From Macrostomum lignano (Eukaryota): DNA of 64,000 bases. The position numbers and the translations under genes were made by a program. Every line of letters starts with the position of its first letter. Positions within the stretch are counted from its first letter, which is position 1. The notes under the pieces are model-generated. The model ran no database searches. It was not told the DNA's origin and worked only from the letters and a program-made list of their open reading frames with translations. Of the stretch, positions 1,355-64,000 are shown piece after piece. The stretch covers positions 1 through 64,000 of the forward strand of contig NIVC01000075.1 in assembly GCA_002269645.1 (NCBI GenBank), written 5' to 3'.

Positions 1355-2097
1355 TTAAAGACGGACGTAAAACGGTCCAAAAATAGAATTTGTGATCGCC
1401 ATTGGCACGGCAGCAAAGCTGAACAGGTGGCACAGGCTCTGTTGCTGTGTATAGATGAAGGCCTGGCAGCTGGAGTTGCATTTAAGTGCGCAGTTCAGTT
1501 CGTCTCCGGCACTGGCGGTCCAGTAAGTCGGATTTGAGTAGCTCGATGTCGTCTGCAGGAACTGTCTCGGCGACTCACGGAATCGGTGGCAGAGGCCTGA
1601 GAAGTGAACGAAATAAATAATGTGACGAAATTGTAGCTCTTTCTTTGGATATTTAGGCGAACGTATTTATAATTACCTGTACGAGCATAAGTCAGTGAGT
1701 ACACAGAGTTTTTGCTGAAACCGCCACATATTTGAGACGAGTTTCCGGAGCATTTGCTTTTGCACTCAGACGCGGTGCCATGGCGTCCGTAGCTGGTGCC
1801 GCAGTAGCAGCCAACGCCACTCTGTAGTCCGCAGTACGGGAATCCGCCCAGCGAGCAGATTCTGCTGCACAGCTCGATTGTCATTCCCGAGCTGCCTGGC
1901 ACGGCGTATCCATAGCTAGACTGCACTTTGAAAATTCCAAGTTGGCTGATGCCAACCAGGGAGTTGAGATCGCGACTCGCTGAGCTGTCAAAATAGCAGC
2001 CAAGATAGGCTAAGCTGGCGATTCTTGCATTGACAGATGACATCAGAAGCAAGATTGACAGGACCAGGAAACTGTTCTTGCTCTGATTGACAGTCAT
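1355..2097 (-). CDS. Secreted WSC-domain + PAN/apple-like domain protein (2 exons, about 220 aa)
   Basis: Exon 1 (2097-1677) encodes a signal peptide (SFLVLSILLLMSSVNA) and a WSC domain (YLGCYFD...MTIELCSRIC...YCGLQSGVGCYCG...CKSKCSGNSSQICGG). The 80-bp intron 1676-1597 runs GTAATT...TTCTCAG, phase 1. Exon 2 (1596-1355) translates to GLCHRFRE...ELNCALKCNSSCQAFIYTQQQSLCHLF...FYVRL*, whose Cys spacing is PAN/apple-like. Confidence 0.85.
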
Positions 2098-10251: not shown

Positions 10252-13200
10252 ATGTCAAAGAAAGCGCTACCATCGATCAGCAGCAAGTACTGCCTTTGGG
10301 TCTGTATGCTGCTACTGTACATGACGCAAACAATACAGGGCTCTACAACAGTAAATACAGAACCTGTTACAGCAACAGTAAAAACCGAACTATCGACTAC
10401 AGAAGGAGACTTAACTGCGTCGGAAGACACAACTCAGAATCCATCGATGTCTGCAGAACCACCGACTGATAAAACAATGAACTTCTCTCCTTCTGCTGAG
10501 ACACCAACTGATTCGACGATGGACCCATCTCCTTCTGCAGGGCCATTAACTGACTCGACAATGGACCCATCTCCTTCTGCAGAGCCATTAACTGACTCGA
10601 CAATGGACCCATCTCCTTCTGCTGAGACACCAACTGATTCGACGATGGACCCATCTCCTTCTGCAGAGCCATTAACTGACTCGACAATGGACCCATCTCC
10701 TTCTGCTGAGACACCAACTGACTCGACAATGGACCCATCTCCTTCTGCTGAGACACCAACTGACTCGACAATGGACCCATCTCCTTCTGCAGAGCCATCA
10801 ACTGATTCGACGATGGACCCATCTCCTTCTGCAGAGCCATTAACTGACACGACAATGGACCCATCTCCTTCTGCAGAGCCATCAACTAACTCGACAATGG
10901 ACCCATCTCCTTCTGCAGAGCCATCAACTAACTCGACAATGGACCCATCTCCTGCAGAGCCATCAACTGACTCGACAATGGACCCATCTCCTGCAGGGCC
11001 ATCAACTGACTCGACAATGGACCCATTTCCTTCTGCAGAGCCATTAACTGACTCGACAATGGACCCATCTCCTTATGCAGAGCCATTAACTGACTCGACA
11101 ATGGACCCATCTCCTGCAGGGCCATCAACTGACTCGACAATGGACCCATCTCCTTCTGCAGAGCCATCAACTGACTCGACAATGGACCCATCTCCTTCTG
11201 CAGAGCCATCAACTGACTCGACAATGGACCCATCTCCTGCAGAGCCAATAACTGATTCGACAATGGACCTATCTCCTTCTGCAGAGACATCAGCGGATAC
11301 ATCTACGAACTCATCGATTGCTACTGAATCAATTACTATTTCATCGACTAATTCTCCTTCACCATCGACTGAAACAACTCTTCATCCATTAACCACAGGA
11401 CCTCCACCGCAGACTGACACAACTATCAATACTTTAACCACAGGTCCTTCACCACCAACTGACACGACTGTCAATCCTTTAACCACAGGTCCTTCAACAC
11501 CAACTGACACAACTGTCAATCCAACAACTGGACCTCCATCACCGGCTGAAACGACTGTCGATCCAACAACTGGACCTCCACCACCGTCTGACACAACTGT
11601 CAATCCTTTAACCACAGGTCCTTCAACACCAACTGACACGACTGTCAATCCAACAACTGGACCTCCATCACCGGCTGAAACGACTGTCAATCCAACAACT
11701 GGACCTCCATCACCGGCTGAAACGACTGTCGATCCAACAACTGGACCTCCATCACCGGCTGAAACGACTGTCAATCCAACAACTGGACCTCCATCACCGG
11801 CTGAAACGACTGTCGATCCAACAACTGGACCTCCATCACCGGCTGAAACGACTGTCGATCCAACAACTGGACCTCCATCACCGGCTGAAACGACTGTCGA
11901 TCCAACAACTGGACCTCCATCACCGGCTGAAACGACTGTCAATCCAACAACTGGACCTCCATCACCGGCTAAAACGACTGTCAATCCAACAACTGGACCT
12001 CCATCACCGGCTGAAACGACTGTCGATCCAACAACTGGACCTCCATCACCGGCTGACACAACTGTCAATCCTTTAACCACAGGTCCTTCAACACCAACTG
12101 ACACGACTGTCAATCCAACAACTGGACCTCCATCACCGGCTGACACAACTGTCAATCCTTTAACCACAGGTCCTTCAACACCAACTGACACGACTGTCAA
12201 TCCAACAACTGGACCTCCATCACCGGCTGAAACGACTGTCGATCCAACAACTGGACCTCCATCACCGGCTGAAACGACTGTCGATCCAACAACTGGACCT
12301 CCATCACCGGCTGAAACGACTGTCAATCCAACAACTGGACCTCCATCACCGGCTGAAACGACTGTCAATCCAACAACTGGACCTCCATCACCGGCTGAAA
12401 CGACTGTCGATCCAACAACTGGACCTCCATCACCGGCTGACACAACTGTCAATCCTTTAACCACAGGTCCTTCAACACCAACTGACACGACTGTCAATCC
12501 AACAACTGGACCTCCATCACCGGCTGACACAACTGTCAATCCTTTAACCACAGGTCCTTCAACACCAACTGACACGACTGTCAATCCAACAACTGGACCT
12601 CCATCACCGGCTGAAACGACTGTCGATCCAACAACTGGACCTCCATCACCGGCTGAAACGACTGTCGATCCAACAACTGGACCTCCATCACCGGCTGAAA
12701 CGACTGTCGATCCAACAACTGGACCTCCATCACCGGCTGAAACGACTGTCAATCAACAACTGGACCTCCATCACCGGCTGAAACGACTGTCAATCCAACA
12801 ACTGGACCTCCACCACCGTCTGACACAACTGTCAATCCTTTAACACAGGTCCTTCAACACCAACTGACACGACTGTCAATCCAACAACTGGACCTCCATC
12901 ACCGGCTGAAACGACTGTCGATCCAACAACTGGACCTCCAACACCGGCTGAAACGACTGTCGATCCAACAACTGGACCTCCATCACCGGCTGAAACGACT
13001 GTCAATCCAACAACTGGACCTCCATCACCGGCTGAAACGACTGTCAATCCAACAACTGGACCTCCATCACCGGCTGAAACGACTGTCGATCCAACAACTG
13101 GACCTCCATCACCGGCTGAAACGACTGTCAATCCAACAACTGGACCTCCATCACCGGCTGAAACGACTGTCGATCCAACAACTGGACCTCCATCACCGGC

Positions 13201-16200
13201 TGAAACGACTGTCAATCCAACAACTGGACCTCCATCACCGGCTGAAACGACTGTCGATCCAACAACTGGACCTCCATCACCGGCTGAAACGACTGTCGAT
13301 CCAACAACTGGACCTCCATCACCGGCTGAAACGACTGTCGATCCAACAACTGGACCTCCATCACCGGCTGAAACGACTGTCAATCCAACAACTGGACCTC
13401 CATCACCGGCTGAAACGACTGTCGATCCAACAACTGGACCTCCATCACCGGCTGAAACGACTGTCGATCCAACAACTGGACCTCCATCACCGGCTGACAC
13501 AACTGTCAATCCTTTAACCACAGGTCCTTCAACACCAACTGACACGACTGTCAATCCAACAACTGGACCTCCATCACCGGCTGACACAACTGTCAATCCT
13601 TTAACCACAGGTCCTTCAACACCAACTGACACGACTGTCAATCCAACAACTGGACCTCCATCACCGGCTGAAACGACTGTCGATCCAACAACTGGACCTC
13701 CATCACCGGCTGAAACGACTGTCGATCCAACAACTGGACCTCCATCACCGGCTGAAACGACTGTCGATCCAACAACTGGACCTCCATCACCGGCTGAAAC
13801 GACTGTCAATCAAACAACTGGACCTCCATCACCGGCTGAAACGACTGTCAATCCAACAACTGGACCTCCACCACCGTCTGACACAACTGTCAATCCTTTA
13901 ACCACAGGTCCTTCAACACCAACTGACACGACTGTCAATCCAACAACTGGACCTCCATCACCGGCTGAAACGACTGTCGATCCAACAACTGGACCTCCAA
14001 CACCGGCTGAAACGACTGTCGATCCAACAACTGGACCTCCATCACCGGCTGAAACGACTGTCAATCCAACAACTGGACCTCCATCACTGGCTGAAACGAC
14101 TGTCAATCCAACAACTGGACCTCCATCACCGGCTGAAACGACTGTCGATCCAACAACTGGACCTCCATCACCGGCTGAAACGACTGTCAATCCAACAACT
14201 GGACCTCCATCACCGGCTGAAACGACTGTCGATCCAACAACTGGACCTCCATCACCGGCTGAAACGACTGTCAATCCAACAACTGGACCTCCATCACCGG
14301 CTGAAACGACTGTCGATCCAACAACTGGACCTCCATCACCGGCTGAAACGACTGTCGATCCAACAACTGGACCTCCATCACCGGCTGAAACGACTGTCAA
14401 TCCAACAACTGGACCTCCATCACCGGCTGAAACGACTGTCAATCCAACAACTGGACCTCCATCACCGGCTGAAACGACTGTCGATCCAACAACTGGACCT
14501 CCATCACCGGCTGAAACGACTGTCGATCCAACAACTGGACCTCCATCACCGGCTGAAACGACTGTCGATCCAACAACTGGACCTCCATCACCGGCTGAAA
14601 CGACTGTCAATCCTTTAACCACAGGTCCTTCAACACCAACTGACACGACTGTCAATCCAACAACTGGACCTCCATCACCGGCTGAAACAACTGTCGATCC
14701 AACAACTGGACCTCCATCACCGGCTGAAACGACTGTCGATCCAACAACTGGACCTCCATCACCGGCTGAAACGACTGTCAATCCAACAACTGGACCTCCA
14801 TCACCGGCTGAAACGACTGTCAATCCAACAACTGGACCTCCATCACCGGCTGAAACGACTGTCGATCCAACAACTGGACCTCCATCACCGGCTGAAACGA
14901 CTGTCGATCCAACAACTGGACCTCCATCACCGGCTGAAACGACTGTCAATCCAACAACTGGACCTCCATCACCGGCTGAAACGACTGTCAATCCAACAAC
15001 TGGACCTCCATCACCGGCTGAAACGACTGTCGATCCAACAACTGGACCTCCATCACCGGCTGAAACGACTGTCAATCCAACAACTGGACCTCCATCACCG
15101 GCTGAAACGACTGTCGATCCAACAACTGGACCTCCATCACCGGCTGAAACGACTGTCGATCCAACAACTGGACCTCCATCACCGGCTGAAACGACTGTCA
15201 ATCCAACAACTGGACCTCCATCACCGGCTGAAACGACTGTCAATCCAACAACTGGACCTCCATCACTGGCTGAAACGACTGTCGATCCAACAACTGGACC
15301 TCCATCACCGGCTGAAACGACTGTCGATCCAACAACTGGACCTCCATCACCGGCTGAAACGACTGTCGATCCAACAACTGGACCTCCATCACCGGCTGAA
15401 ACGACTGTCAATCCAACAACTGGACCTCCATCACCGGCTGAAACGACTGTCAATCCAACAACTGGACCTCCATCACCGGCTGAAACGACTGTCAATCCAA
15501 CAACTGGACCTCCATCACCGGCTGAAACGACTGTCGATCCAACAACTGGACCTCCATCACCGGCTGAAACGACTGTCGATCCAACAACTGGACCTCCACC
15601 ACCGTCTGACACAACTGTCAATCCTTTAACCACAGGTCCTTCAACACCGACTGACACGACTGTCAATCCAACAACTGGACCTCCATCACCGGCTGAAACG
15701 ACTGTCGATCCAACAACTGGACCTCCATCACCGGCTGAAACGACTGTCGATCCAACAACTGGACCTCCATCACCGGCTGAAACGACTGTCAATCCAACAA
15801 CTGGACCTTCATCACCGGCTGACACGACTGTCAATCCATTAACCACAGGTCCTTTACCACCGACTGACACAACTGTCAATCCATTAACCACAGGTCCTTC
15901 ACCAACGACTGACACGACTGTCAATCCAACAACTGGACCACCGCAGACTGAAACGACTGTCAATCCATTAGTTACAGGACTGACTCCATTGACCGAATCA
16001 ACTGTTAGTGTAACTTCAACAGCGTTGAATTTTTTATCTACTGGATTGTCATCATCTGATACAAGTGTTCCAAGTTTTCAAGCGACTGACACGACTATGT
16101 CAGTCACAAATTCACCAAGTGCTTTAAGTGGCGTGACACCGACAGACACTGTTTTAGCGAGTGCTCAAACAAGTGGCGTGCTAACGACGGACACAACCGT

Positions 16201-20737: not shown

Positions 20738-21550
20738 TCAGCTGGAATTGGCATCAGCCCCGCTGTCGCTAGCGGAACAGCTGCTCAACCCAAAAGTTGA
20801 GCTGGGACAGCCAGTAGCAGCAGCCGCAGCAGCAGCTCCAGCAGATGCCCTAGCGGCAGCCGACTCAAGCACAGTGTAAAACAGTCTCAAAGGTCCTTTC
20901 CTACGCCAAGCGTACACGTAGGCAATATCCATAATAGAGAAGTCGGCGTGCAAACAGTCCTCAGTGTAGAATATTGCAATAGACTGAGTCGGTCGTAGGT
21001 CCAGTTTCAATCGGAGAAATTTTTGCAACTGTTGCACAGTAAGACAGGCGGGCGCTAGCAGGTAGCAAGCCCGAGTCTGATCAACGCAATCAGTTCTGAG
21101 CAGTCGGCCATTACGGATTCGCTTAGTGTCGGCCAGTTCAAGCGACAAGGACACCCGTTCGTCGTCCTGGACTAGGCTAGCAGTCTCTGGTGCTAATAAA
21201 TCGCCGCGTTTCTCCGGACTCAAAGCTCGGTCAGACCCAGCCGAAGGATGCTCAACGTAGAACTGACGGCGACGAGTCATCTCAGATTTGAATAGGCCGG
21301 GCACGAGTTTGTACACGAGCGATTGCAGCGCCCGGTCTAGGCGGATGGCGCGGTATGGATCGCCTTTGTGCAGCTGGATATCGCATACTGGACAGGCGTG
21401 CTGCTGAGTCAGATGGGTCAATAGGCACGAGCGACAGAAGGCGTGCAAGCATTCTACTATGGTAGTAGCGTCAATCAGGTAGCCCTGGCATAGGCGACAG
21501 GTGATGTGCTCGTTTAATTGATTGATTGGCAGGTGTACTAGCTTGTGCAT
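20738..21550 (-). CDS. bmi1: Polycomb group RING finger protein, Bmi1/PCGF4 (Psc)-like; intronless, 270 aa
   Basis: C3HC4 RING (CRLCQGYLIDATTIVECLHAFCRSC...CPVC), the conserved LVYKLVPGLFKSEMTRRRQFY segment, and a RAWUL-like domain (LTVQQLQKFLRLKL...IMDIAYVYAWRRKGPLRLFY). Confidence 0.93.
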   Translation of the reverse strand: MHKLVHLPINQLNEHITCRLCQGYLIDATTIVECLHAFCRSCLLTHLTQQHACPVCDIQLHKGDPYRAIRLDRALQSLVYKLVPGLFKSEMTRRRQFYVEHPSAGSDRALSPEKRGDLLAPETASLVQDDERVSLSLELADTKRIRNGRLLRTDCVDQTRACYLLAPACLTVQQLQKFLRLKLDLRPTQSIAIFYTEDCLHADFSIMDIAYVYAWRRKGPLRLFYTVLESAAARASAGAAAAAAATGCPSSTFGLSSCSASDSGADANSS

Positions 21551-27967: not shown

Positions 27968-30900
27968 TCAAACAAAATTTGGCGCCAAAGACGAGAACCT
28001 GGCGTGCAGACTGGCCGGGCTAAGCCGTTTACCAACGCTAGCTGGTGTCCAACACTCGGCCAGAGTTTCAGAAATAAATGGCAGCGCCGGATGATTCTGC
28101 ACCGGCAGTGTCAGAGAGGCCGACAGAGGATTAGCAGTAGACAAATAGTCTAGGCCGGGCCTGAGCAGAGCTGCTCTAGCCTGAGAAACTGTTAGAGTTC
28201 GTTGAGCAGACGAATCGGCCGATGAGGCAGACGAACTGCGAACTTTTAGCCGGTCAGAGAATACGGGAGCATAGGACGGCGGCGATTCCGATTTATCGTA
28301 AAATGCAGAGCACCTGCGCAATGCGAGTTAAGGTAGTGTGAACTAAATTCTAAATATGAATGTAGTTAATTATGGCAGTAAATAATCCAGCTACAAGTGT
28401 CAATGATTTCGTTTCAAATGATTGAGGGAATATTAAAGTTTATTTATTATCACTTTGATTAATAAAATCATTTTCTGAAATCATTCAGAAAAGTTGTATT
28501 GAATAGTCAAATATAAGCTCTGCAATGACAGGTATAAACGGTCTTTAGGTATCAACAACGAGTATCGATTGATTGATAACGTCTCAGTAATTATCGATCA
28601 GAGAAATGAGGGTCAATGACGTCATTAAGTATAAATGCGGGTCGATGACGTCAGCAAATATCAGGTGGTCAATAACGCTATTAGGTATAAATGCGGGTTG
28701 ATGACGTCATTAGGTTATCCATACGGGTTGATGACGTCATTAAGTATCAATATGGGTCGATGAAGCCAGAAAGCATCAATGAGAGTTGATGATGTGAGTA
28801 AGTATTAATGAGGGTCGATGACGTCAGCAAATATCAGGTGGTCAATAACGCTATTAGGTATAAATGCGGGTCGATGACGTCATTAGGTTATCCATATGGG
28901 TTGATGACGTCATTAAGTATCAATATGGGTCGATGAAGCCAGAAAGCATCAATGAGAGTTGATGATGTGAGTAAGTATTAATGAGGGTCGATGACGTCAG
29001 TAAGTATCAATGACGTCATAACCATATCAAAGTATCCCATAGAAGACTACACTGTGATTGGACTTACCGGATAGCGACCTCCCACAGTATGAGGCCTAGC
29101 GAATAAGAATCAGCCGCCATCAGCTGTTCCAGATTGAACGATCCCTGACCCTGCTGATGCAATTTGCCATTCCGTTTCTGATTATGATGCTGCGGAGTCT
29201 GCTGGGAAGCTGCTAACAGCTCTGGTGCAGCGTAGCGCAGGTGACTACCAACGGTGGAACAGAAGCCGGACAGGCCCACTAGCAGTGGTGCCAGCGGCCC
29301 TCTGAGCACAAAGCTGGCAGTCTCTAATCGGCAATGAGCCCGACCGATGCTGTGCAACTGGGCCACGGCGGCGCAGAGGGCGCAGGCTAAACGACAGAAA
29401 TCTGACCAGCTGTAGCACCTGGATTGGTTGAATTTTATCAGTTGAAAGTGAGTAACAGATGGGGGCTTGAGTTCACTTGAGCAGCTGGATAAATTTATTG
29501 GGATTTTTAGTGTCACCCAAAGTTAACTATGTACCCAAATAAATATCTTGCTGTTCACCTAAAAAAGAAGGGCACTTTTTTGACATCTGGTATATGACTG
29601 GGTATTTATCCGGGTATTCGGCTGGGTATTTATCTGGGTATACAGCTGGGTATTTGTCTGATCGTACGGCTGGTATTTATCCGGTTATACGACTGGGTAT
29701 TTATCTGGGTATACGGAAGGGTACTTATTTGGGTATATGACTGGGTATTTATCTGGGTATACGGCTGGGTATTTATCTGGGTATATGGATGGGTACTTAT
29801 TTGGGTATATGACTGGGTATTTATCTGGGTATACGACTGGGTATTTTTCTGGTTATACGGCTGGGTACTTATTTGGTATTTATATGGGTATATGACTGCC
29901 CTTCAAGACTCATGCATGACTATAAAATACGTGCCAACCCCTTCTACCTAGCTTCGTCTAGTTTCAACACTCATCACCAGTGCAAAGTGCATATAAAAGC
30001 ATAGATATAACTTATAAAGGTAATAATGCTAATTAGCTGAACTGTGGTAGGCATCTCTGCAAAGCAATGCTGTATACGAGCGTATTAATAATTATGATTA
30101 TCAGGCTTACAAATCCATAGCCAAGACCTACGCTGCATATACGCATATTGTACGTAACAGTTGTACAGAATAAAAGCTAAGTATATCCGATAGCAAATCT
30201 CTCTCACGCCCTTGCTAATGCTTATATAAATATAGACAATATAGATCTAGCTAATCTAAATCTAGATAATAATTGGAAGGCCAATAAAACGGTTATGTCA
30301 TTTCAAATTTGAACATGTCGCGCCAAGAGTACTATGACACAAGAAACTCGTTAAAGTGCTTTTAGTCACAATACTCCTGGAGTTTTATCAATATCTAAAA
30401 GTACAGCAAGAACTAAGTGATAGATAAAGAATTCACCTATCGGCCAACTGGTCGGATAAGCAGCCACCGGTGGCCAGTTCCAGCAGCAGACATGGCCTCT
30501 GTCCGGTGTACATTGTGCAACCAAACAGCCTGGGGAAGAATGTCACAGCGTTGGCTCGCTCCAGCTTGCGATAAGAAGACAGCTCAGACCGGTACTGGGC
30601 TAAAGAGCTCGACGATTCCGGATAAAATAGCTTGGCAACACACGATCGACTCCCGCTGCTGTCACCGGCTGAGGACTGATTGAGGCATGATGGGAAGGTT
30701 GATAAGGGATCGCCGTTCTGAGACCCAAGTATGGATGGGTCGAATCAGAATTCAGTAGCTTATGGGACTGATTATTGAGGCTGGACAAGGGGGTTATCAA
30801 ATCTCAAATGGGGATCAGAGAATCTACAATGGGGATTATACTATCTACAATGAGGATTAGAGAATCTAAAATGGAGATCAGAGAATCTAAAATGGGGATC

Positions 30901-31718
30901 AGAGAATCTAAAATGGCGATTAGAGAATCTAAAATGGGGATCAGAAAATCCAAAATGGACATTAGAGAATCTAAAATGGGGATCAGAGAATCTACAATGG
31001 TGATTAGAGAATTTAAAATGAGGATTAAATAATGCTAGATGGAGATTAGACAATCTATAAAATGGCGATTAGAGAATCTAAAATGGGGATCAGAAAATCC
31101 AAAATGGGGGTTAGAGAATCTAAAATGAGGATTAAAGAATCTAAAATCGGGATTAGATAATCTAAAATAAGGATTAAAGAATCCAAAATGAGGATTAACG
31201 AATATAAAATGAGGATTAGATCATCTAAATAAGGGATTATAGAATCTAAATAAGGGATTATGGAATCTAAATAAGGGATTATGGAATCTCACATCTAGCA
31301 CAGCCTCGTAGATGATGGCGGCTTTTCCCGAACAAGGCAGCTGCCTGACCAACCGAACGCTGCAGTCATCCATCGACGGAGTCCCGCCAGCTGACGAAGA
31401 GCTGCAGCCGGTGCCTCTCGCAAGCAGCCAGTCGTGATTGGTGCCAAAATTGTGACCACCGTTGCCCATAGCGGCCGACGACGAGGACACAGCCGCCGAC
31501 GAGGCGCCGGCGCGTAATCGGCGCCGATTTAAGCGCCTCCGACGGCGCCAAACGATACCTATACAGGCTAATAATAGGCATCCTAAACCGGCGTACAAAC
31601 CAATTGAAGCGGCTAAAAATATAGCGAATCTCTGACGGCCCCATTGTTCGGCGTCCATTGGCGAGTGTGACACTGGCGTCAGGGCCATTGTGACATTGAT
31701 ATCCACTAGAGCTGGCAT
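27968..31718 (-). CDS. TGF-beta type II receptor (BMPR2/wit-like) kinase-fold protein, predicted pseudokinase, single TM, no visible ectodomain (4 exons, 467 aa)
   Basis: Exons 31718-31293 (phase 0), 30717-30437 (phase 2), 29418-29068 (phase 2) and 28313-27968 have canonical GT-AG sites and compatible phases. TM FAIFLAASIGLYAGLGCLLLACIGIVW is followed by RRRRR. Kinase landmarks: CVAKLFYP, YRSEL, LLLELATGGCLSDQL, WSDFCRLA, LRYAAPELL, ADSYSLGLILWEVAIRC, ISETLAECW...KRLS. HRD is replaced by HCR and DFG is absent. Confidence 0.88.
28605..29020. repeat. About 29-bp diverged minisatellite with 173-bp higher-order duplication, containing nine TGACGTCA sites
   Basis: TGACGTCA at about 28617, 28646, 28702, 28732, 28819, 28875, 28905, 28992 and 29011. 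Spacing of 173 recurs (28646/28819/28992; 28702/28875; 28732/28905). Confidence 0.9.
29590..29900. repeat. 24-bp (2x12) minisatellite GACTGGGTATTTATCTGGGTATAC, intronic
   Basis: Period of 24 (29739 to 29763). Confidence 0.9.
30800..31290. repeat. 21-bp minisatellite AAATGGGGATCAGAGAATCTA, intronic
   Basis: Period of 21 (30861 to 30882); the array abuts the exon-1 donor of the pseudokinase gene. Confidence 0.92.
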
Positions 31719-33468
31719 GCTGCGTCAGCCTCACAATCCTTTGCTCTTTCTCTCTATCGAGTCGAAGCCGACTTTGCCCTCGTCGAATCACCTTTCTCTC
31801 TCTCTCTTTCTCTCACTGTTAATGATATGGCTATTATTGTTAACTATTTCGCACCGTGAGAGCCTGGAAAAAGCGAAAATAAATTATGAATCAAGAAAGC
31901 AGAGTTTTAATCTTTTATAGTAAAATTATATTAATACATACTTTATAGCAATACAAAACTTGTGGGAAGCTTGGTTGAATGTAACGATTAGCCAAAGATT
32001 GGGGGTCTGAAAATATGGGCATATATAGACAGTGTAGACACAGAGACAGAGAGAAACTATGGACTATGAGACAGAACTGTAATATAGGCAAAATAACGCT
32101 TTGATGTTTGGATATATCGAAGAAGTCAGCTCTCCTATTGGATGAGCACTATTGAGCACGTTTTCATTCCTTCCCAAATTCTCCTCAAATCGGCCGGGAC
32201 CTGCCCCCTTCCCTCACTAGCTCTCTGGCTTCCCTCCTGCAGGATGCCTCGAGGGAAGCGAATGCCCCATCAGTTTTTTCATCAAAGCACACAGACTGCC
32301 TGCCTGACTAACTGACTGAAAGAGCCAATGCCCCTCTGCGCACAGATCTTTTTCCCATTGCGCTACACTCTTTCCTACCTCACTACACTGCCCCCTGCTC
32401 AATCCGATCTTTTCCTTCCCTTGCCTGAAACTTCTATCTTTCAGGGAATGCCTCACTGTTCTGATGGGATTGGGAGCAGCAAGCCGAGGGATTAAAGTTA
32501 GAACTAAAAATACAATTTAAAAGGGGCAGTCAGGCGAACAATCTAACCAAATTAATCCCGTTAATTTTTTGCTGCAGCTACACTTGAGCAAATACTACTT
32601 TATTCTGGGGAATGATTTTTTAAAGCATCAAAAGTGTTACTACGGATGCAATTTCTTGTGATTCACCAGTATAGTCTGGAATGTATTCTTAAAATTTGGG
32701 ATTTTCGACAACTGTAAATTCTGGGATTTACAATAGCAACTTTTTAAATGACAGCAATTCATGCAATTCCAAATTTCATATTTTACTACCGACAGACAGT
32801 TGACCCACCAATACTAACCCACAATGTCAGCTAATCATGAGGCGAGGCATGGTCTGTGATATGGTTGTGACCATAGATCTAGATCTAGTAGATCTAGTTC
32901 CTACAATGTGAATAAGAGTAAGATGCTTTCTTTTCAACAAAAAATTGAAGGCTAAAACTATCATCACAGCCTATGATTACATTTGAATGCTAATTAAATC
33001 TTTATCAAGGTCTGTCTAGGAGGACTAAAATTACTTTGGGCTGGGAATTACTTTGATTTACGAGTATAATCCTGGGATTTTGGGATTTCCTAATCTGATG
33101 ATTGAAAAGTGGTAGGATTTGGAAATCCCTACTTACCAATATGAGCTATTATTTCAACAATCACTATTTAGAGGCGATACCAGCATGCTATAAGAGTTTA
33201 AATGTGATTTGAACTACCAATCTCATTCATATTGATAATAATCTATATTTATCAACTATTCCTTAAGTAGGCTATTCTACATATTTTAATTTTTTCTGTG
33301 TGTTTAGTAAGGCAACTATCATTATAAAAACAATTAGCATCAATTCATTCAAAAAAGTTTGGTATAAAAAAGATCTACAAAAGTTTAGCTAGCAAATTCC
33401 TGGGGCTTTAAAATACATTATTACAATAGTATTTTCCAGATACCAATAATGCAGGCAAAACCATATAT

Positions 33469-35063: not shown

Positions 35064-36042
35064 AGGAGTGCTACAGGGTGACACTCTGGCGCCCTTTCTC
35101 TTTGTGCTGGTGATGGACTGGGTGCTCAGGACCGGCCTGCTGACATCAGAGGATGGCTTTCTGCTGCAAAGGCGCACCAGTAGATGGCACCCGGAGAAGA
35201 AACTGTCTGTTCTTGGCTACGCAGATGACCTCGCCCTGCTGTCTTCCATGGCCGAAGGCGCCCAACGGCTGCTGGACGGCCTGACTGTGGTGGCGGCGAG
35301 GGTCGGTCTCGTCATCAATGCCAGGAAGACCAAGGTGCTGATGGTGCCGCATGATCTACCCGCCAAGATTCGACTTCGAGACGGCGATGGCCCCGGGACG
35401 GCGCTCCTGAAGTGCCTTCAGTTTGTCTACCTTGGCGAACTGGTGCCAGATGTCGGTGACAACCTAATGAGATGGCGCGGCAAGGCCTGGGCTGCCTTCC
35501 GATCTGTGCGGGCGGTGCTGCTCTCCGAGGCCCTGTCCGACGGCGCCAGGTCCCAGCTGTTCCAGGCGGTTGTTGAGACCACCCTGCTGTACAATGCTGA
35601 GACGTGGACGCTGACCGGGGCGCTTGAGGCGCAGCTCAATGCATCACATGCGGCCCTAGTCTGCGCCACTTTCGGCGCCCGCCGCGGCCCTGGCAGCGAG
35701 ACAACTGAGTCCCTGTACAAGCACACAGGCCTGACGCGGCCTTCGGCCCTGCTGAGTCAGCGGCGCCTGCAGCTTGCCAGACATGTCATCTGGGCCGAAG
35801 CCTGCTGCCCAGAGCCACTGCAAGACGTCCTGCTGTGGACCCCGCAGGGACCATGCAGGTGTGGCCAGGGACGATCAGCCCACTATGTCGACCGCCTTTT
35901 TGAAGATGTGTGAGCACCCAGCCAGACGGCCAGTGTGAAGCACATTAGAGACCTAGCTCTGAAACGCGCGATTTGACGCTCCCATCTCTTGGCCACTCCC
36001 GTGGCTAGCATGGGGCGTAACTATTATTATTATTATTATTTT
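35064..36042 (+). mobile_element. 5'-truncated RTE-like LINE: C-terminal half of reverse transcriptase, 3' UTR and (TTA)n tail
   Basis: GVLQGDTLAPFLFVLVMDWVLR...YADDLALLS...GLVINARKTKVL...FVYLG...LLYNAETWTL, followed by a (TTA)n tail at about 36021-36040. The sequence starts abruptly at the QGD motif. Confidence 0.9.
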
Positions 36043-39886: not shown

Positions 39887-40487
39887 TCAAAGCTCGGTCT
39901 TCGTATTCTTGTCCTCCTCTGCCTCTTCTTCCGGCGGATCGGGAGTGCCGTTGAATCCGTAGCCTCTCAGCAGATCCTTGATCTCGTCGGAAGACTTGTC
40001 CAGCACATCAATCCGGTGCGCGTACTTCTTCTCCTGGGTGAATATGTAAAGCGTTGGCTTGGCGTCCTGCCCGTTCTTCCAGTAGACGTTTGGCCAGTAT
40101 TCTTCCTGCAGGATCGACTTGACAAATTCTTTAATGTTAGTCAGGTTGGAGCCGCACTGCAGGTGGGCGTGCAGCATAGCATAGGACGGCCGCATGTCGT
40201 CGTCCTTTCTGGTGCGATTCCATTCTACATTGTCCCTGATGATAACCTCCTTGAATCGAGTTTCATTGTACTTGGGCCGTTTGGCCTTCTGGGCCGATTG
40301 CGAGTCGCCTTCATTGGACGCAGCGGTGATCACGGAGGCCAGGTAGAGAATGCAGCAGATCGCAGCGACGGCAGCGACGCTCCTGGTCCTGAGAGTTGCC
40401 TGCACATAAATAAATCGAATTGGTAAATTTTGTGCACTCATATTAGAAAATGAACGTATTTCAAAACAGAATAATGAAACTCACCAT
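39887..40487 (-). CDS. Sep15/SelM-family thioredoxin-like ER protein, non-selenoprotein (171 aa; first coding exon is ATG only)
   Basis: ATG|GTGAGT at 40487-40485, an 85-bp intron, then acceptor GTGCAG| at 40400. Exon 2 (40399-39887) gives a signal peptide (SVAAVAAICCILYLASVITAA), LQCGSNLTNIKEF...KPTLYIF...RIDVLDKSSDEIKDLLRGYGF, an acidic tail and C-terminal KTEL (KDEL-like). Confidence 0.75.
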
Positions 40488-44235: not shown

Positions 44236-47200
44236 TCAGTGAAACTCCTTAACAAGGAATTCGCGCATCTTCTCGCAGTGGAACATCTGGTTTTCAACCT
44301 GGCCCCGATGGGACCGATCCGACAGATCGGCCCGCTCGATAAGGAAGGACAGATCTTCGACAGCTTTCTCCAGCATAGCCTGTTGAACACAGAAATGGTT
44401 AGAGTCAAACGCCTTTGCCCTTAACACTACTGTTAGTAGTGTATATATTATGCTAAAAAATGCTACAAAAACTGTCTCCCAACAAGACTCTACGCGACTC
44501 ATTCAACTTTTTTAAAAAATTCAAACGACTCTTATACTAATCTAATACGTCCTTGTGCTATTGCTAGACATTCTACGTTTCCGTTCTCCATATTAAACTT
44601 TATTCTCTTCAATCGTCTTGCTATCAAGTGTAAAATTGATAAGCCAGGGTTTTTTAAGCATCACATATAATAATAATAATAACTGATTACACCTATAATG
44701 GGCAGATGTGCAACCGACAGCTCAGCCGCAGCTATTGCGCGGCGCATCTGAAGGCTGCGTACGGCTGTTCAGTCCAAGGACTGGGGGGGGGTCGCCTCAC
44801 AGCCTCAATTACCCCAGCTAATGCTGGCACCCATTTTACAGCTGGGTGAACTGAAGCAATGCAGAGTTAAGTGCCTTGCTCAAGGACCCAAATTGTCCCG
44901 AGTGGACCGAGAATCGAACCTCCGACTTTTCAGTCGTGAGTCCAACGCTCTAGCCACTAGGCATCGCAATTGTAGTGCCAAATTGAAAACCAGGATGCCA
45001 GCTAGTCAAACAATTCTGCAGACTCCATATTTACAGATTACTCAAATTTTAATTTGGCATTCTGGGTCCAACTTCAGGATGGCAACAAGTAAAGTTGAAA
45101 AGCATTGGCAACATGACTTCCATGGTACCTAGGCCAAAAAGGTCCCTTGCCTCGGCCCAAAGTCGTTTCAGTCGTTGCAGGTAACTCAGGAAACTCAGGT
45201 AAAATAGAAAAGAAGTGACTCTAGAAGACTCTAAAACTACGAGATGTCACGGTACAGGTCGCCATAAAGTCGTCAAAGAGTCACCTAAGAGTCACTTTAA
45301 AGCGTTTTATTGTCTGCGACTCTGAAACCACTCTAGTCACAAAGTTGTGCTTGAGGCGCATTTGCGTTGCTTGATGAAATTAGAGTCACATCCCCGGTGA
45401 AAGTTAAGCGCCAACACAGAGATTCTTGGACGAATCTACCGTGACTCTTTTACGATTCTGCGACTCTACGATTCAGCCTCTCTGTCGCATTTGACGCGTT
45501 TTGAGTCGTTACAGTCACAAGAGTCGCTAGAATCACAAGAGAGTTGCTTGCAGGCACTCCCCAGCTATTATTGTCTCGGTATCGTCTTTAATGGGCAGTA
45601 CAGAAAACGTTTAACTTAAACTCACCTGCTGATACTCAAACAGTTCCTTGCGCACGTGACCCTTAGGCAGAAAATAGGCGTACGGGTAGGTGTACTGCAG
45701 GGTGTAGCGGCACCGGCGCAGCATCTCAGCCGCCACAATCAGGTACTGCCAATCAATCCAGGTGCCCTCGCTCAGCATGACGCGCTCTTCAATTCGGTCG
45801 CGAATCTTTTTCAAAGCGTCGGCCTCCAATCGCAGAGACTTGCCGTGATTGTCCCAGCGGGTGAAATAGTGCAGATATTTGCGCAACGCCTCGCGAGCCT
45901 GGGCGCCTGCGGCGGCCTCACTAAGCATCGACGGATTCTCTTTGTACTTGCTGCACTCGTAGAAATCTTTGCCGTGCTGACGCCAGTCGCCGAGGCAAAC
46001 CCAGCAGAAATCGAATCTGCACTTGAAGCACTGCATATGATTGCAGCCGCCGTTCTTTTCGATGCAAACTCCGCATTTTGGACAGTCCTGGATTGGGAGG
46101 TTCGAGTGTTCGTTTTGGTGCTAACTAGGATGACAGCATTTACAGACTTTCAAAAACTGCGTTTCGACAGTATTCAAACTGGCTTTTGTGATCTGGTTAT
46201 CTGTCTGTCTGAAGTTGTCTGCTGTCGTCTGGACCTGCCAATCTTTTTTGTCTGGGCCTGTTTGTCTTTCATGTCTGGACCTGGTTGTTGGTATTTCCTT
46301 ACCTGTCTGTCTAAAGTTGCATTTTCTATTGTCTGGACCTGCTGTCTTCTATGTGTGGACTGTGTGGACTACCATAGAAGGTCTGTCTGTTATATCTGAA
46401 CCTGTCTTTTTTGTACATATCTAGCTGGCCAACTGAACCTATCTTGTCTGACCGCCTGTCTCTTTGTTTTAAGTATCTGTCTGACTGTCTGTAGTATCTT
46501 TCTTTCTGCAGTGTCTGCTGTTGCAGTCTGTCTGCTTTTGCAGTGTCTGTCTGCTATTGCAGTGTCTGTCTGCTTTTGCAGTGTCTGTCTGCTGTTGTAG
46601 TGTCTGTCTGCTATTGCAGTGTCTGTCTGCTGTTGCAGTGTCTGTCTGCTGTTGCAGTCTCTGTCTGCTGTTGTAGTGTCTGTCTGCTATTGCAGTGTCT
46701 GTCTGCTGTTGCAGTGTCTGTCTGCTGTTGCAGTCTCTGTCTGCTGTTGTAGTGTCTGTCTGCTGTTGTAGTGTCTGTCTGCTGTTGCAGTGTCTGTCTG
46801 CTGTTGCAGTGTCTGTCTGCTGTTGCAGTGTCTGTCTGCCGTTGCAGTGTCTGTCTGCCGTTGCAGTGTCTGTCTGCAGTGTCTGCTGTTGCAGTCTTTG
46901 TCTGCTGTTGTAGTGTCTGTCTGCTGTTGCAGTGTCTGTCTGCTGTTGCAGTGTCTGTCTGCTGTTGTAGTGTGTGTCTGCTATTGCAGTGTCTGTCTGC
47001 TGTTGCAGTGTCTGTCTGCTGTTGCAGTCTCTGTCTGCTGTTGTAGTGTCTGTCTGCTATTTCAGTGTCTGTCTGCTGTTGCAGTGTCTGTCTGCTGTTG
47101 TAGTGTCTGTCTGCTGTTGCAGTGTCTGTCTGCCGTTGCAGTGTCTGTCTGCAGTGTCTGCTGTTGCAGTGTCTGCTGTTGCAGTGTCTGCTGTTGCAGT

Positions 47201-57097: not shown

Positions 57098-58102
57098 ATG
57101 AATCAGAATCAGGCTAATGATGCCATCGCCATGCTGGCAGAAGAATTGCGAAACCGACTAGAGATAGGGCCGATGAGACACGTTAAGATTCAGAAATTCA
57201 CACCTACGCAAGACATTCGGATCTGGCTAACAGCCTTCGATCAGCGCTGTGAAGTAGAAGGGATAGATGAGGAACATAGGAAGCAGGAATTGCTAGCTAA
57301 TCTGGACCTGTCCACTGCATTCGCAGCGGTACAGCGCCTAAATCTGCCCGAGGATCTTGAATACGAAGAGTTCAAAGAGCGACTGATTGAGCGATTCGGA
57401 AGAATCGGTAGTTCCGCAGAATTCAGAGAGGAGTTTCGTGGAAGAATGCAAGGCAGAAATGAGCCTGTAGAGACTTTCGCAGACTGTTTGATCGAGCTGG
57501 CATCGCGTGCATTTCCGAATATGACGGTTGAGCAAAGGGAAGAAGAAATTGTTGAGCAATTCATCAAGGGAATCAGAATTCCGTCAGAGACCCGTGAGAA
57601 GCTTATCTTTGCGCAGCCAGGCAATTTACAAGAGGCTAGAAGAATGCTAAGAAGGATGGAGGCTGCGTGGAACATGTCTCACAAGAATGTCAACATGAGA
57701 ATGGCCAAAGGCGAAGGCGAGAGTGAGCAGAAGGCAGATCAGGAAAAGCTTGAGGACATCATCAAGAAGCAGAGAGCAGAGTTAGAGCAACAGAAGAAGG
57801 CGATTGAGGAGCTGATGGAAGAGAAGAGAGCTAGCCGTCAGCAGTATCATCCGCAGAATCAATATCAAACGTACGCTCAGGTCGCTGGACCGCCGCAGCA
57901 GCCGAGATATCGGCCGCAGCAGCAGCAGCAGCAGCAGCCAGTATGGCGCGGTCAGCCTCAGTTCAACAGGCAGCCACAGCAACAGCAGCAGCCTCGAGCC
58001 TGCTACAATTGCGGGAAGCTTGGCCACATGGCGAGGAATTGCCAGAGCGCTAGGCCAAACGGTCAGCGAGTGATGGACTACCAGAAGCAGCAGGGAAACT
58101 GA
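57098..58102 (+). CDS. gag: Gypsy gag (capsid-like domain, Q-rich linker, CCHC zinc knuckle)
   Basis: 334-aa ORF with a retrotransposon-gag region (FREEFRGRMQGRNEPVETFADCLIELASRAFP) and CYNCGKLGHMARNC. Confidence 0.92.
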   Translation: MNQNQANDAIAMLAEELRNRLEIGPMRHVKIQKFTPTQDIRIWLTAFDQRCEVEGIDEEHRKQELLANLDLSTAFAAVQRLNLPEDLEYEEFKERLIERFGRIGSSAEFREEFRGRMQGRNEPVETFADCLIELASRAFPNMTVEQREEEIVEQFIKGIRIPSETREKLIFAQPGNLQEARRMLRRMEAAWNMSHKNVNMRMAKGEGESEQKADQEKLEDIIKKQRAELEQQKKAIEELMEEKRASRQQYHPQNQYQTYAQVAGPPQQPRYRPQQQQQQQPVWRGQPQFNRQPQQQQQPRACYNCGKLGHMARNCQSARPNGQRVMDYQKQQGN

Positions 58103-60096
58103 GTAGCGAGGGCCGCTTTGCGAGGCCACGTCCCTCTAGCAACAATTATCGCGAATTTCAGGCCTCTGAATTTGTAAATAATGCGTATCGAAGTAATGCC
58201 AGACAGTATAGTAACAGCAGAACGCATGCCGAATTCAATAAATTTCACAGAAAACCAAATAAAAATTTTGCACCTCGTGTACATATGCCGCTTGCACCTA
58301 GTCATGCGTCTGCTAGCCACAGTAGGCCGAATAATAAAGTACAAAGTACAGTAATTCCGAATGAGCATTCGAAGAGAGAATTCGAAGAAGATACGGAGAG
58401 AAAAGGACGAGAAGCAGTCGTCAATGGAATGCTAAGAAACCGAAAGGTCTACTTCCTGCTAGACACAGGAGCTGGACATAATTTCCTAAGCAAGAGTACT
58501 TGGAAAAAGATGTTCAGAAGTGATGAAATTGAGTTGACTACTAGAAGAGTGACTACGTTTGACGGATCAAGTGTGCGAATTGAAGGAGAAGTCAGAACGA
58601 AAATACGATTCGGAGAGATAGAGATTGAGACAGAGTTCCTGCTGTGCAATCACGAGTGTGACGACATACTCGGGATGGAGTTCTTCATGAACTTCTGCGA
58701 CAGCATCAGCCTTTCTAGAGGAATGCTTGTATTAAAAGAAGGGACCTGCATCCCAATTAAGTTTACAAAATTACCCGTACGGGTTTGCCGAATTTACAGC
58801 CATAACAGCGTGACTATACCAGCGAATAGCGCTCTTCGAATTCCAATTAGAATGACTAAAGGATCAGAAGCTAACTATGGAACGCCAATGGTCATTGACA
58901 CCATTGGAGGCCAAGTGACTACGAAGAGAAATTCCTTAGAGATGATTCCTACTCTAGTGACCATGAACGATGGAACAGGAGTAGTGGAAATAATCAATCG
59001 ACAGAATGACGATATCAGACTGACAAGATCTACGCTGATTGGAGTGGCCAAACCCTTGAAGCCAGGAGGCCTGGCCTACTCTATTAACAGCAAAGGTCAA
59101 GCCAGTTCAGATGATGCAATTAGGACAGTGAAGAGTGAAGAGAGTGAGTACAGCTGGATAAACGAGATCGATTTAGGAGAAGAGCTAACATCAGAACAGA
59201 AAGGACTAGTGATCGATTTGCTAAAGAAGAACAAGGAAGCATTTTCGCAGACCAACCAAGACATGGGTCTCACCCATCTTGTGACTCATGAAATATCTCT
59301 AAAAGATACCACACCGGTCAGGATTCCAACACGCAGAATTCCACCACATCTGCAAAAGCAAGTAGATGAGCAACTTGACGACATGCTTGCTAAGAACCTG
59401 ATCCGACCATGCTATAGTACTTATTCAACGCCGCTAGTGATAGTTCCTAAGAAGGATGGATCCATAAGAATCGTCAGTGACTTCAGGGTCCTGAACTCGA
59501 GAGTGAACTATTACCCATATCCATTGCCGAACATACAAGAGACTTTCGCTCAGTTATCTGGAAGCAAGTACTTCAGTAGTCTAGATTTAAACTCTGGATA
59601 CTGGCAGGTACCTATCAAAGAAGAGCACAAATTTATGACAGCCTTTTCCACCCTTACCAGAGGCCAGTTCGAATATCAGGTCATGGCACAGGGCTTGTCT
59701 AACGCTCCTGGTACATTCCAGAGACTCATGAATTTGGTGCTGATGGGAATACAGCACAAATTCGCAATGTCGTACATAGATGATATTGTGACATACTCAG
59801 AGAAATTCGAAGATCATCTCGGTCATCTGCAAGAAGTATTTCAAAGACTAATCTCAGCAGGACTAAAATTAAGACCAAAAAAGTGCAACTTGTTTCAGAA
59901 AGAGCTAAAGTACTTAGGGCATATCGTAGGAAGAGAAGGGATTAGAACAGACCCAGCTAAGATCGAAGCGATACAGTCATGGCCTACGCCGAAAGAGGTC
60001 AAAGAACTGCGAAGCTTCTTGGGGTTGTGTAACTACTACTGCAGATTTGTAAAGAATTACGCAGAGGCAGCGCATCCGCTATTTCCTATATACTAA
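58093..60096 (+). CDS. pol: Gypsy pol (aspartic protease + reverse transcriptase), entered by -1 frameshift, truncated before RNase H/integrase
   Basis: The frame is open from 58093 to 60096, -1 relative to gag. Motifs: FLLDTGAGHNF (protease), YSTPLVIVPKKDGSIRIVSDFR, FSSLDLNSGYWQV, YIDDIV, YLGHIV and ELRSFLGLCNYY. Gypsy homology stops at about 60084. Confidence 0.92.
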   Translation, partial: GKLSSEGRFARPRPSSNNYREFQASEFVNNAYRSNARQYSNSRTHAEFNKFHRKPNKNFAPRVHMPLAPSHASASHSRPNNKVQSTVIPNEHSKREFEEDTERKGREAVVNGMLRNRKVYFLLDTGAGHNFLSKSTWKKMFRSDEIELTTRRVTTFDGSSVRIEGEVRTKIRFGEIEIETEFLLCNHECDDILGMEFFMNFCDSISLSRGMLVLKEGTCIPIKFTKLPVRVCRIYSHNSVTIPANSALRIPIRMTKGSEANYGTPMVIDTIGGQVTTKRNSLEMIPTLVTMNDGTGVVEIINRQNDDIRLTRSTLIGVAKPLKPGGLAYSINSKGQASSDDAIRTVKSEESEYSWINEIDLGEELTSEQKGLVIDLLKKNKEAFSQTNQDMGLTHLVTHEISLKDTTPVRIPTRRIPPHLQKQVDEQLDDMLAKNLIRPCYSTYSTPLVIVPKKDGSIRIVSDFRVLNSRVNYYPYPLPNIQETFAQLSGSKYFSSLDLNSGYWQVPIKEEHKFMTAFSTLTRGQFEYQVMAQGLSNAPGTFQRLMNLVLMGIQHKFAMSYIDDIVTYSEKFEDHLGHLQEVFQRLISAGLKLRPKKCNLFQKELKYLGHIVGREGIRTDPAKIEAIQSWPTPKEVKELRSFLGLCNYYCRFVKNYAEAAHPLFPIY

Positions 60097-63700: not shown

Positions 63701-64000
63701 CATGTAAAAATCATAGAAGCGTCATGTAAACAATCATTGAAGCGTCATGTAAAAATCATAGAAGCGTCATGTAAACAATCATTGAAGCGTCATGTAAAAA
63801 TCATTTAAGCGTCATGTAAAAATCATAGAAGCGTCATGTAAACAATCATAGAAGCGTAATGTAAAAGCAAAGAAGCGTCATGTAAAGATCATAGAAGCGT
63901 CATGTAAAAAAATCATAGAAGCGTCATGTAAAAAATCATAGAAGCGTCATGTAAAAAATCATAGAAGCGTCATGTAAAAATCATGGAAGCGTCATGAAAA
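60715..64000. repeat. 23-bp satellite (AGAAGCGTCATGTAAAAAATCAT)n, more than 3.2 kb, with about 1-kb higher-order repeats; runs off the window
   Basis: Period of 23 (60781 to 60804). Diagnostic variants recur at a 971-bp offset (GCGTCAAG 60965/61936; GCGTCACG 61011/61982; GCGTGATG 61034/62005). Confidence 0.97.

Follow-up and report, generated by a model that had tools for sequence, protein, structure and literature searches.

Can the cytoplasmic kinase fold of a TGF-beta (transforming growth factor-beta) type II receptor be kept once the protein has lost both its ligand-binding ectodomain and its capacity for catalysis? Many extracellular antagonists modulate TGF-beta/BMP signaling, as does a single classic pseudoreceptor, BAMBI. 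The question is raised by a gene of Macrostomum lignano located on contig NIVC01000075.1 (assembly GCA_002269645.1), of which positions 1 to 64000, hereafter the window, were analyzed. An earlier note, made from the letters of this 64-kb stretch, had read the gene as a membrane-anchored, type II receptor-like pseudokinase devoid of an ectodomain. It occupies positions 27968-31718 on the minus strand, the same span as the annotated range of PAA91733.1 (BOX15_Mlig003883g1). The gene is therefore already annotated, without function, and is seen in one species; its GenBank label is 'hypothetical protein', and a UniProt rule gives the name 'Receptor protein serine/threonine kinase' to a fragment copy. 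Its identity as a derivative of BMPR2/wit-type type II receptors, together with its catalytic death, is in our assessment likely. The wider explanation, that it is a lineage-restricted BMPR2/wit-type paralog, so far known in M. lignano only, that has lost ectodomain and catalysis and acts on BMP/activin-type signaling, has about an even chance of being correct.

Four exons (31718-31293, 30717-30437, 29418-29068, and 28313-27968) are joined by GT-AG splicing into a single 467-aa frame, as the earlier note had proposed. The GenBank model is identical except for the acceptor of exon 2, which lies at 30675, 42 nt downstream of 30717, and yields 453 aa. Each of the three genomic copies of the gene (described below) has both acceptors intact, and the extra 42 nt of the 467-aa form carry two differences among these copies, both of which change an amino acid. 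Pfam PF07714 scored the 453-aa form at 25.2 bits versus 21.9 for the 467-aa form, the gathering cut-off being 23.1. The M. lignano annotation is a genome-guided RNA-seq transcriptome generated with StringTie and TACO, in which evidence of trans-splicing and poly(A) addition defined the gene boundaries; novel transcripts were retained only at a level of at least 0.5 reads per kilobase per million mapped reads (RPKM) or with the support of a de novo assembly (PMC5730564). Hence, transcripts are made from the pseudokinase locus, and RNA supports the 453-aa splice form. This form is taken as the main product of the gene, and residues are numbered on it throughout. No mention of Mlig003883, Mlig016454, or Mlig028532 was found in the literature or in supplements, and the gene was not among the searchable neoblast and germline gene lists.

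To judge catalytic status, the protein was aligned with 64 distant relatives. Lys157 (CVAKLF), the alphaC Glu (YRSELSS), the APE motif at residues 286-288, and the alphaF Asp of subdomain IX (Asp325) are all retained in conserved columns. The Gly loop is degenerate (LPCSGKAA), HCRLETAS stands in place of HRDLKxxN, and V-G270-L-S-G occupies the DFG position, such that the DFG Asp is replaced by Gly. Both the kept and the degenerate motifs had been named from the letters alone, and the multiple alignment places them in the same register. In this register the spacing is canonical (6 from LH to His and 20 from His to DFG), and the strand pattern of the AlphaFold2 (AF2) model agrees with it. For these two reasons, an alternative register from a pairwise phmmer alignment with TGFBR2, shifted by nine residues so that LRG would correspond to HRD and TVG to DFG, was rejected; we think that the shift arises from an insert before HRD in TGFBR2 that is missing in the pseudokinase. 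The activation loop is ~20 residues short, with ~13 residues separating the DFG position from APE. Whichever register is chosen, the 46 residues from LHS to APE (243-288) lack Asp, Asn, and Lys altogether; canonical phosphotransfer is therefore ruled out. As judged from its sequence, the protein is a pseudokinase: it has a predicted kinase fold and a PF07714 score above the cut-off (453-aa form), it keeps the Lys, and the Asp residues of HRD and DFG are both gone.

The sole hydropathy window with a Kyte-Doolittle mean above 1.6 covers residues 31-57 (Table 1), and positive charge is distributed unevenly on its two sides. Two Lys or Arg residues occur in the 30 residues before this transmembrane segment and nine just after it, all of the latter being Arg. 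By the positive-inside rule, this asymmetry places the kinase-like domain in the cytoplasm. No signal peptide was detected in the N-terminal 30 residues. We infer an N-out/C-in signal-anchor (type III) protein in the orientation of a receptor kinase, with a predicted stub of 30 residues outside the cell. A transmembrane helix, a poly-Arg stop-transfer, and a lead of about 30 residues without signal peptide had been recognized in the earlier note, and hydropathy, charge asymmetry, and the AF2 model agree with that description. Since one uninterrupted exon encodes both the transmembrane segment and the first two kinase strands, the link between anchor and kinase is independent of the inferred splices. 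Also in agreement with the earlier note, no Cys-box exon was recovered upstream: a profile of 21 type II ectodomains, run against all stop-free six-frame segments of the window, found nothing; its best E, 0.5, fell at 49.8 kb on the opposite strand, and on the gene's own strand, from the gene up to its upstream neighbor (31.7-39.9 kb), no E was below 24. The protein itself had no match to the Pfam ectodomains PF01064 or PF08917.

The AF2 model was built from an alignment of distant matches rich in type II receptors. It has a mean predicted local distance difference test (pLDDT) score of 76 and a predicted template modeling (pTM) score of 0.70, with 210 residues at a pLDDT of at least 90. A kinase fold spans residues 120-448, a long helix runs through the transmembrane segment (23-72), and the Ser-rich and Gln/His-rich inserts are disordered with low pLDDT. 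When the model was submitted to Foldseek, the top seven matches were TGFBR2, BMPR2, and ACVR2A, at TM-scores of 0.75-0.78 to receptor kinase domains (target-length normalized). The predicted kinase fold is thus closest to type II receptors. There is no GS box, as PF08515 gave no match and the juxtamembrane sequence contains no SGSGSG.

Sequence searches point to the same family. In a phmmer search of all PDB sequences, the sole matches below 1e-3 were TGFBR2 (4e-8), ACVR2A (8e-6), BMPR2 (1.5e-4), and ACVR2B (9e-4); type I receptors reached 0.14 and other kinases at least 0.01, and the top seven distinct sequences were all kinase domains of these four type II receptors. The C-lobe alone (alphaF to the C terminus, 140 aa) matched only TGF-beta-family receptors up to an E of 10, with type II ranking above type I. 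When 1.84 billion representative proteins were searched exhaustively with phmmer, 66 came up at E ≤1e-3, including the gene itself and P0005, a frameshifted version of this gene in an earlier annotation that was for this reason rejected as an ortholog. Type II receptors account for about 39 of the 64 distant matches, being recognized by the motif Q-x-D-V-Y-S/A-L-G-L-x-L-W-E and by a CCxxxxCN Cys box, which many of them carry, or Pfam ectodomain matches; those with names are annotated as 'bone morphogenetic protein receptor type-2' or 'wishful thinking' and come from insects, a tick, an octopus, and a ray. A profile of type II kinase domains scored the pseudokinase at 77-87 bits.

Like BMPR2 and wit, which also provide the best sequence and fold matches, the protein is predicted to cross the membrane once, a short juxtamembrane segment leading into a cytoplasmic kinase fold, and it has no GS box and shares the C-lobe motifs NL-x-E/D...D-x-Y-S/A-L-G-L-x-LWE-x-A-x-RC and ET-x-E-x-CW...RL. 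Unlike them, it has no three-finger ectodomain, Cys box, or signal peptide, and its catalytic motifs have changed from HRD to HCR, from the catalytic Asn to Ser, and from the DFG Asp to Gly. Its activation loop is shorter by the ~20 residues noted above, the insert between alphaE and HRD is absent, and exon 4 ends without the long C-terminal tail of the BMPR2 type; identity to any receptor is ~25%. Since ectodomain and catalytic competence both fail, we describe the protein as a putative type II receptor-derived pseudokinase rather than class it with the type II receptors themselves.

What such a protein might do is suggested by what it has kept. Loss of the ectodomain would preclude ligand binding in the type II manner, and loss of the catalytic residues would preclude phosphate transfer by the canonical mechanism. 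The C-lobe, from alphaF to alphaI, may have been retained as a protein-docking surface inherited from type II receptors, because it is here that the family-specific conservation sits. The pseudokinase would then be a noncatalytic, ligand-independent partner tethered to the membrane; the cytoplasmic domains of type I receptors, or else other proteins that bind type II receptors, would be its likeliest targets, and, as a decoy or a scaffold, it would dampen or scaffold BMP/activin-type signaling. That it acts on TGF-beta-family receptor complexes specifically is conceivable but doubtful.

The earlier note had likened this design to a mirror image of BAMBI, and the architecture, a stub outside and a kinase-like domain inside, bears the comparison out. 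BAMBI is a naturally truncated TGF-beta receptor relative that lacks one functional half and cannot signal (PMC10073696). In both proteins one functional half of the receptor is missing; however, BAMBI combines a type I-like ectodomain and a transmembrane segment with a short nonkinase tail, whereas the M. lignano protein combines a 30-aa stub with a dead type II-like kinase, and the two have no sequence relationship. The boldest form of the proposal, an 'inverse BAMBI' that is selectively maintained, docks on the cytoplasmic domains of type I receptors, and tunes BMP/activin signaling gain from within the cell, would be rather unlikely as a whole. To our knowledge, such an intracellular mode of TGF-beta pathway regulation is undescribed in animals.

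A type II-derived scaffold could alternatively have been neofunctionalized outside TGF-beta/BMP signaling, with the tethered dead kinase organizing some other lineage-specific process, in which case it would be an ordinary lineage-specific orphan pseudokinase. Its extreme divergence from every receptor, the loss of the type II insert and activation loop, the novel Ser-rich and Gln/His-rich inserts of low pLDDT, the lack of orthologs elsewhere, and the constraint among gene copies all suit this history. A C-lobe that is family-specific is nevertheless more easily explained by a retained family partner, and nothing positive points to another pathway; we give this alternative a small, though real, chance.

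Evidence for constraint comes from three syntenic copies of the gene, on NIVC01000075.1, NIVC01000076.1, and NIVC01001852.1. M. lignano, a hidden polyploid of recent origin, has many redundant genes, and the sequenced line is partly polyploid (PMC5730564), which the three copies fit. Their coding sequences differ by 17 substitution events, of which 11 are synonymous and six nonsynonymous. Pairwise ratios of nonsynonymous to synonymous divergence (dN/dS) are 0.09-0.23, at a dS of ~0.026 that is near the mismatch of the flanks (1.8-2.5%). Under the transition/transversion ratio of the flanks, 69% of neutral changes would be nonsynonymous (69-75% overall), and the binomial probability of observing six or fewer among 17 is 0.005 (unweighted, 7e-4). 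The 1362 nt of coding sequence contain no gap opening in any copy, compared with ~6 predicted from the 4.7 per kb of the flanks, and every splice site is intact in every copy. Given this pattern of substitutions and indels, and a frame that has stayed intact through a divergence far older than the copies, the comparison argues for purifying selection on the gene. The earlier note had held that intact splicing and frame speak against simple decay; dN/dS, the absence of indels, and the RNA-based gene model now add to that view, and simple decay is unlikely. The note had asked for dN/dS against orthologs in related species; the values above come from copies within M. lignano, no ortholog having been found among the 1.84 billion representative proteins.

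The same data bear on a further alternative, that the locus, though transcribed, is a duplicate without function that is turning into a pseudogene, its frame open only because the copies are young. Such a duplicate would be free to lose all catalytic residues and the ectodomain, to gather low-complexity inserts, to leave no detectable ortholog, and to be missing from the searchable neoblast and germline gene lists, and a hidden polyploid with many redundant genes would be a fitting host; moreover, copies just 1-2% diverged put few mutations to the test. It would not be expected to show so few nonsynonymous changes, zero indels across three copies, intact splice sites in all of them, or a hydrophobic core that AF2 folds with high confidence, nor an intact frame when divergence from active receptors far predates the copies. 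We consider this alternative unlikely.

Several findings weigh against the type II-derived pseudokinase as we read it. The N-lobe and catalytic core are generic (CaMK 0.0035, TGFBR2 0.04), and the type II-specific insert between alphaE and HRD is absent. A profile of the nonreceptor matches scored 101.9 bits versus 86.8 for the type II profile, although its members were preselected for resemblance to the query; the comparison is biased accordingly and carries no weight in the classification. A neighbor-joining tree (327 columns) joined the pseudokinase to eight generic tyrosine kinase-like (TKL) kinases, outside the type II clade. This placement is probably due to long-branch attraction and is regarded as uninformative; even so, the tree and the higher nonreceptor profile score, though expected for a long branch and a query-selected set, leave phylogenetic membership unproven. 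The AF2 input alignment was dominated by type II receptors, which biases the fold match in that direction. No ortholog outside M. lignano was found by phmmer among the 1.84 billion representatives (whether other Macrostomum species are present there was unchecked), and a word-indexed homolog search returned the gene's own cluster only; long-term conservation is therefore unproven. The selection test comprised 17 substitutions only, and the neighboring genes (PCGF-like RING, Sep15/SelM-like, and Ariadne) are uninformative on function. The BMPR2/wit-like kinase fold claimed in the earlier note thus stands on the PDB, C-lobe, phmmer, and Foldseek results and falls short in the generic N-lobe, the tree, and the missing insert; likewise, of the profile search and phylogeny that it had proposed, the type II profile recognized the protein and the tree set it beside generic TKLs.

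Were the gene of nonreceptor origin, a generic TKL-group pseudokinase fused to a transmembrane segment, its C-lobe likeness to type II receptors would have to be convergent or a statistical accident. An N-lobe that best matches CaMK and other kinases, a generic profile that scores higher, a tree that does not support type II placement, and the absent insert are all in line with that origin. Nevertheless, four paralogous human type II receptors outrank every other kinase in the PDB, the C-lobe finds TGF-beta receptors exclusively even at an E of up to 10, type II receptors make up ~60% of matches while being a tiny fraction of kinases, and the architecture (a transmembrane segment and a short juxtamembrane stretch leading to the kinase domain, without a GS box) agrees with a receptor, making this origin very improbable.

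At the 5' end of the gene, two in-frame TGA codons precede the ATG, at -9 and -15; the nearer had been noted earlier as three codons upstream, and the second adds to it. Any upstream coding exon must therefore splice inside exon 1. The sequence just 5' is purine-rich, AG dinucleotides within exon 1 are poor acceptors, and the RNA-based models at all three loci share the same start ATG. A Cys-rich ORF ~1 kb upstream (32813-32643, CCHLKSC) was considered as a Cys-box exon and rejected, the ectodomain profile being silent even at E 100; when the window is translated in six frames, chance alone yields the motif CC-x4-C 15 times. Conservation upstream of the three copies could not serve to detect exons, the flanks being 96-99% identical throughout. 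The next features upstream are a reverse-transcriptase fragment on the opposite strand, the Sep15/SelM-like gene, and an Ariadne-type gene. In flatworm TGF-beta receptors, 5' gene models are often wrong and canonical signal peptides often missing (PMC10073696). An incomplete model, in which ectodomain and signal-peptide exons lie upstream or are too divergent to recognize and splice into exon 1 past the in-frame stops, could appeal to such errors, to a kinase domain whose divergence, if matched in the ectodomain, could let the latter evade the profile, and to the Cys-rich ORF, but the start shared by three RNA-seq-guided models, the two TGA codons, the purine-rich context with its poor acceptors, the blank profile, the chance frequency of the motif, and the reverse-transcriptase fragment and unrelated gene next upstream make it very improbable.

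The closest flatworm precedent for a type II-derived pseudokinase, compared by published description only, is EmTRL of Echinococcus multilocularis. EmTRL is weakly expressed, has a typical Cys-box ectodomain, keeps one of six invariant kinase residues, and forms a clade of flatworm type II-like receptors with Smp_124450 and Smed_74605 (PMC10073696). The M. lignano pseudokinase differs in having no such ectodomain and in keeping the beta3 Lys, alphaC Glu, and alphaF Asp. Altered catalytic motifs were also seen among the type II-like phmmer matches, with HRQ in place of HRD in P0020, HRN and AGFDF in the jellyfish protein P0031, and HCG or HCD together with DFQ in P0036 and P0043 from house-dust mites. 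In these four the catalytic core is much better preserved than in the M. lignano protein, and loss of catalytic motifs may be recurrent among type II receptors. Plant receptor-like cytoplasmic kinases (RLCKs) are receptor-kinase paralogs without an ectodomain, some of them catalytically dead, that serve as partners of full receptors; they would be a functional analogy only, belonging to another kinase family (IRAK/Pelle-like) and another kingdom. If the M. lignano gene is a constrained type II derivative without ectodomain or catalysis, the cytoplasmic kinase fold alone would be reusable as a regulator or scaffold, and the gene would be the second flatworm case, after Echinococcus EmTRL, of a type II receptor turned pseudokinase. 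M. lignano offers transgenesis, RNA interference, and BMP-dependent patterning and regeneration, which make the idea directly testable.

Table 1. Features of the pseudokinase gene and its immediate 5' flank, in window coordinates
Feature	Position	Strand	Location or basis
In-frame TGA, three codons 5' of the ATG	31725..31727	-	Second TGA at -15
Exon 1: ATG, 30-aa stub, transmembrane segment, poly-Arg, Ser-rich juxtamembrane segment, kinase beta1-beta2	31293..31718	-	ORF; AF2 helix 23-72
N8-V-T, the sole N-glycosylation sequon, within the stub predicted to be extracellular	31689..31697	-	
Transmembrane helix, residues 31-57, FAIFLAASIGLYAGLGCLLLACIGIVW	31548..31628	-	Kyte-Doolittle mean 2.19; pLDDT 93-97
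Poly-Arg stop-transfer, RRRRRLNRRRLR	31512..31547	-	Positive-inside rule
Gly loop, LPCSGKAA	31317-31340	-	Exon 1
Alternative acceptor at 30717, adding 14 aa, NGDPLSTFPSCLNQ, to give the 467-aa form	30717	-	Exon 2
Exon 2, annotated acceptor: beta3, alphaC, hinge	30437..30675	-	
VAK, Lys157	30625-30642	-	Exon 2, beta3
alphaC Glu, YRSELSS	30574-30594	-	Exon 2
Exon 3: alphaE, degenerate catalytic loop, shortened activation segment, alphaF with type II-like D-x-YSLGLILWE	29068..29418	-	
Catalytic loop, HCRLETAS	29313-29336	-	Exon 3
VGLSG at the DFG position	29265-29279	-	Exon 3
RYAAPE	29220-29237	-	Exon 3
Gln/His-rich insert	29139-29204	-	Exon 3
Exon 4: remaining C-lobe, Ser-rich low-confidence loop	27968..28313	-	
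ETLAECW	28049-28075	-	Exon 4
KRLSPASLHARFSSL	27986-28030	-	Exon 4
Stop codon	27968-27970	-	Exon 4

Tandem repeats fill parts of all three introns of the pseudokinase gene. Intron 1 contains a minisatellite at 30800-31289 with a 21-nt unit in 23 copies, intron 2 an array at 29585-29876 (24/72 nt), and intron 3 an array at 28605-29013 (29/173 nt), whose 29-nt unit holds a CRE-like palindrome, TGACGTCA. The lengths of these intron arrays vary among the three gene copies.

Located 6.4 kb downstream of the pseudokinase and on the same strand is a single-exon PCGF-like Polycomb gene with RING and RAWUL domains (20741-21550, minus strand), the synteny of which is kept at paralogous locus L002. On the other side of the gene, a separate reverse-transcriptase fragment (35068-35910, plus strand) precedes the upstream neighbor, a 184-aa ORF at 39890-40441 (minus strand) with a weak match to the Sep15/SelM redox domain (E 7e-4, under the Pfam cut-off). 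This ORF is annotated as a 171-aa gene at paralogous loci L002 and L003 and is missing from the annotation of NIVC01000075.1. Upstream of it lies an Ariadne-domain (RBR E3 ligase) exon at 45614-46000 (minus strand), and a WSC-domain ORF is found near the start of the window (1498-2097, minus strand).

A coding-looking tandem array at 10486-15967 consists of ~126 copies of a 42-nt (14-aa) unit at ~90% identity, with a GC skew of -0.3 to -0.38. It falls within long ORFs, for example, one of 863 aa on the plus strand (10252-12843) without a Pfam match, and looks like a gene for a mucin- or adhesive-type repeat protein. A long terminal repeat (LTR) retroelement at 57098-60093 (plus strand) has open ORFs for gag (zinc knuckle) and pol (aspartyl protease and reverse transcriptase). 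From 60716 to 64000, the window is occupied by a satellite with a 23-nt unit and a 270-nt higher-order period, present in ~145 copies and continuing past the window end.

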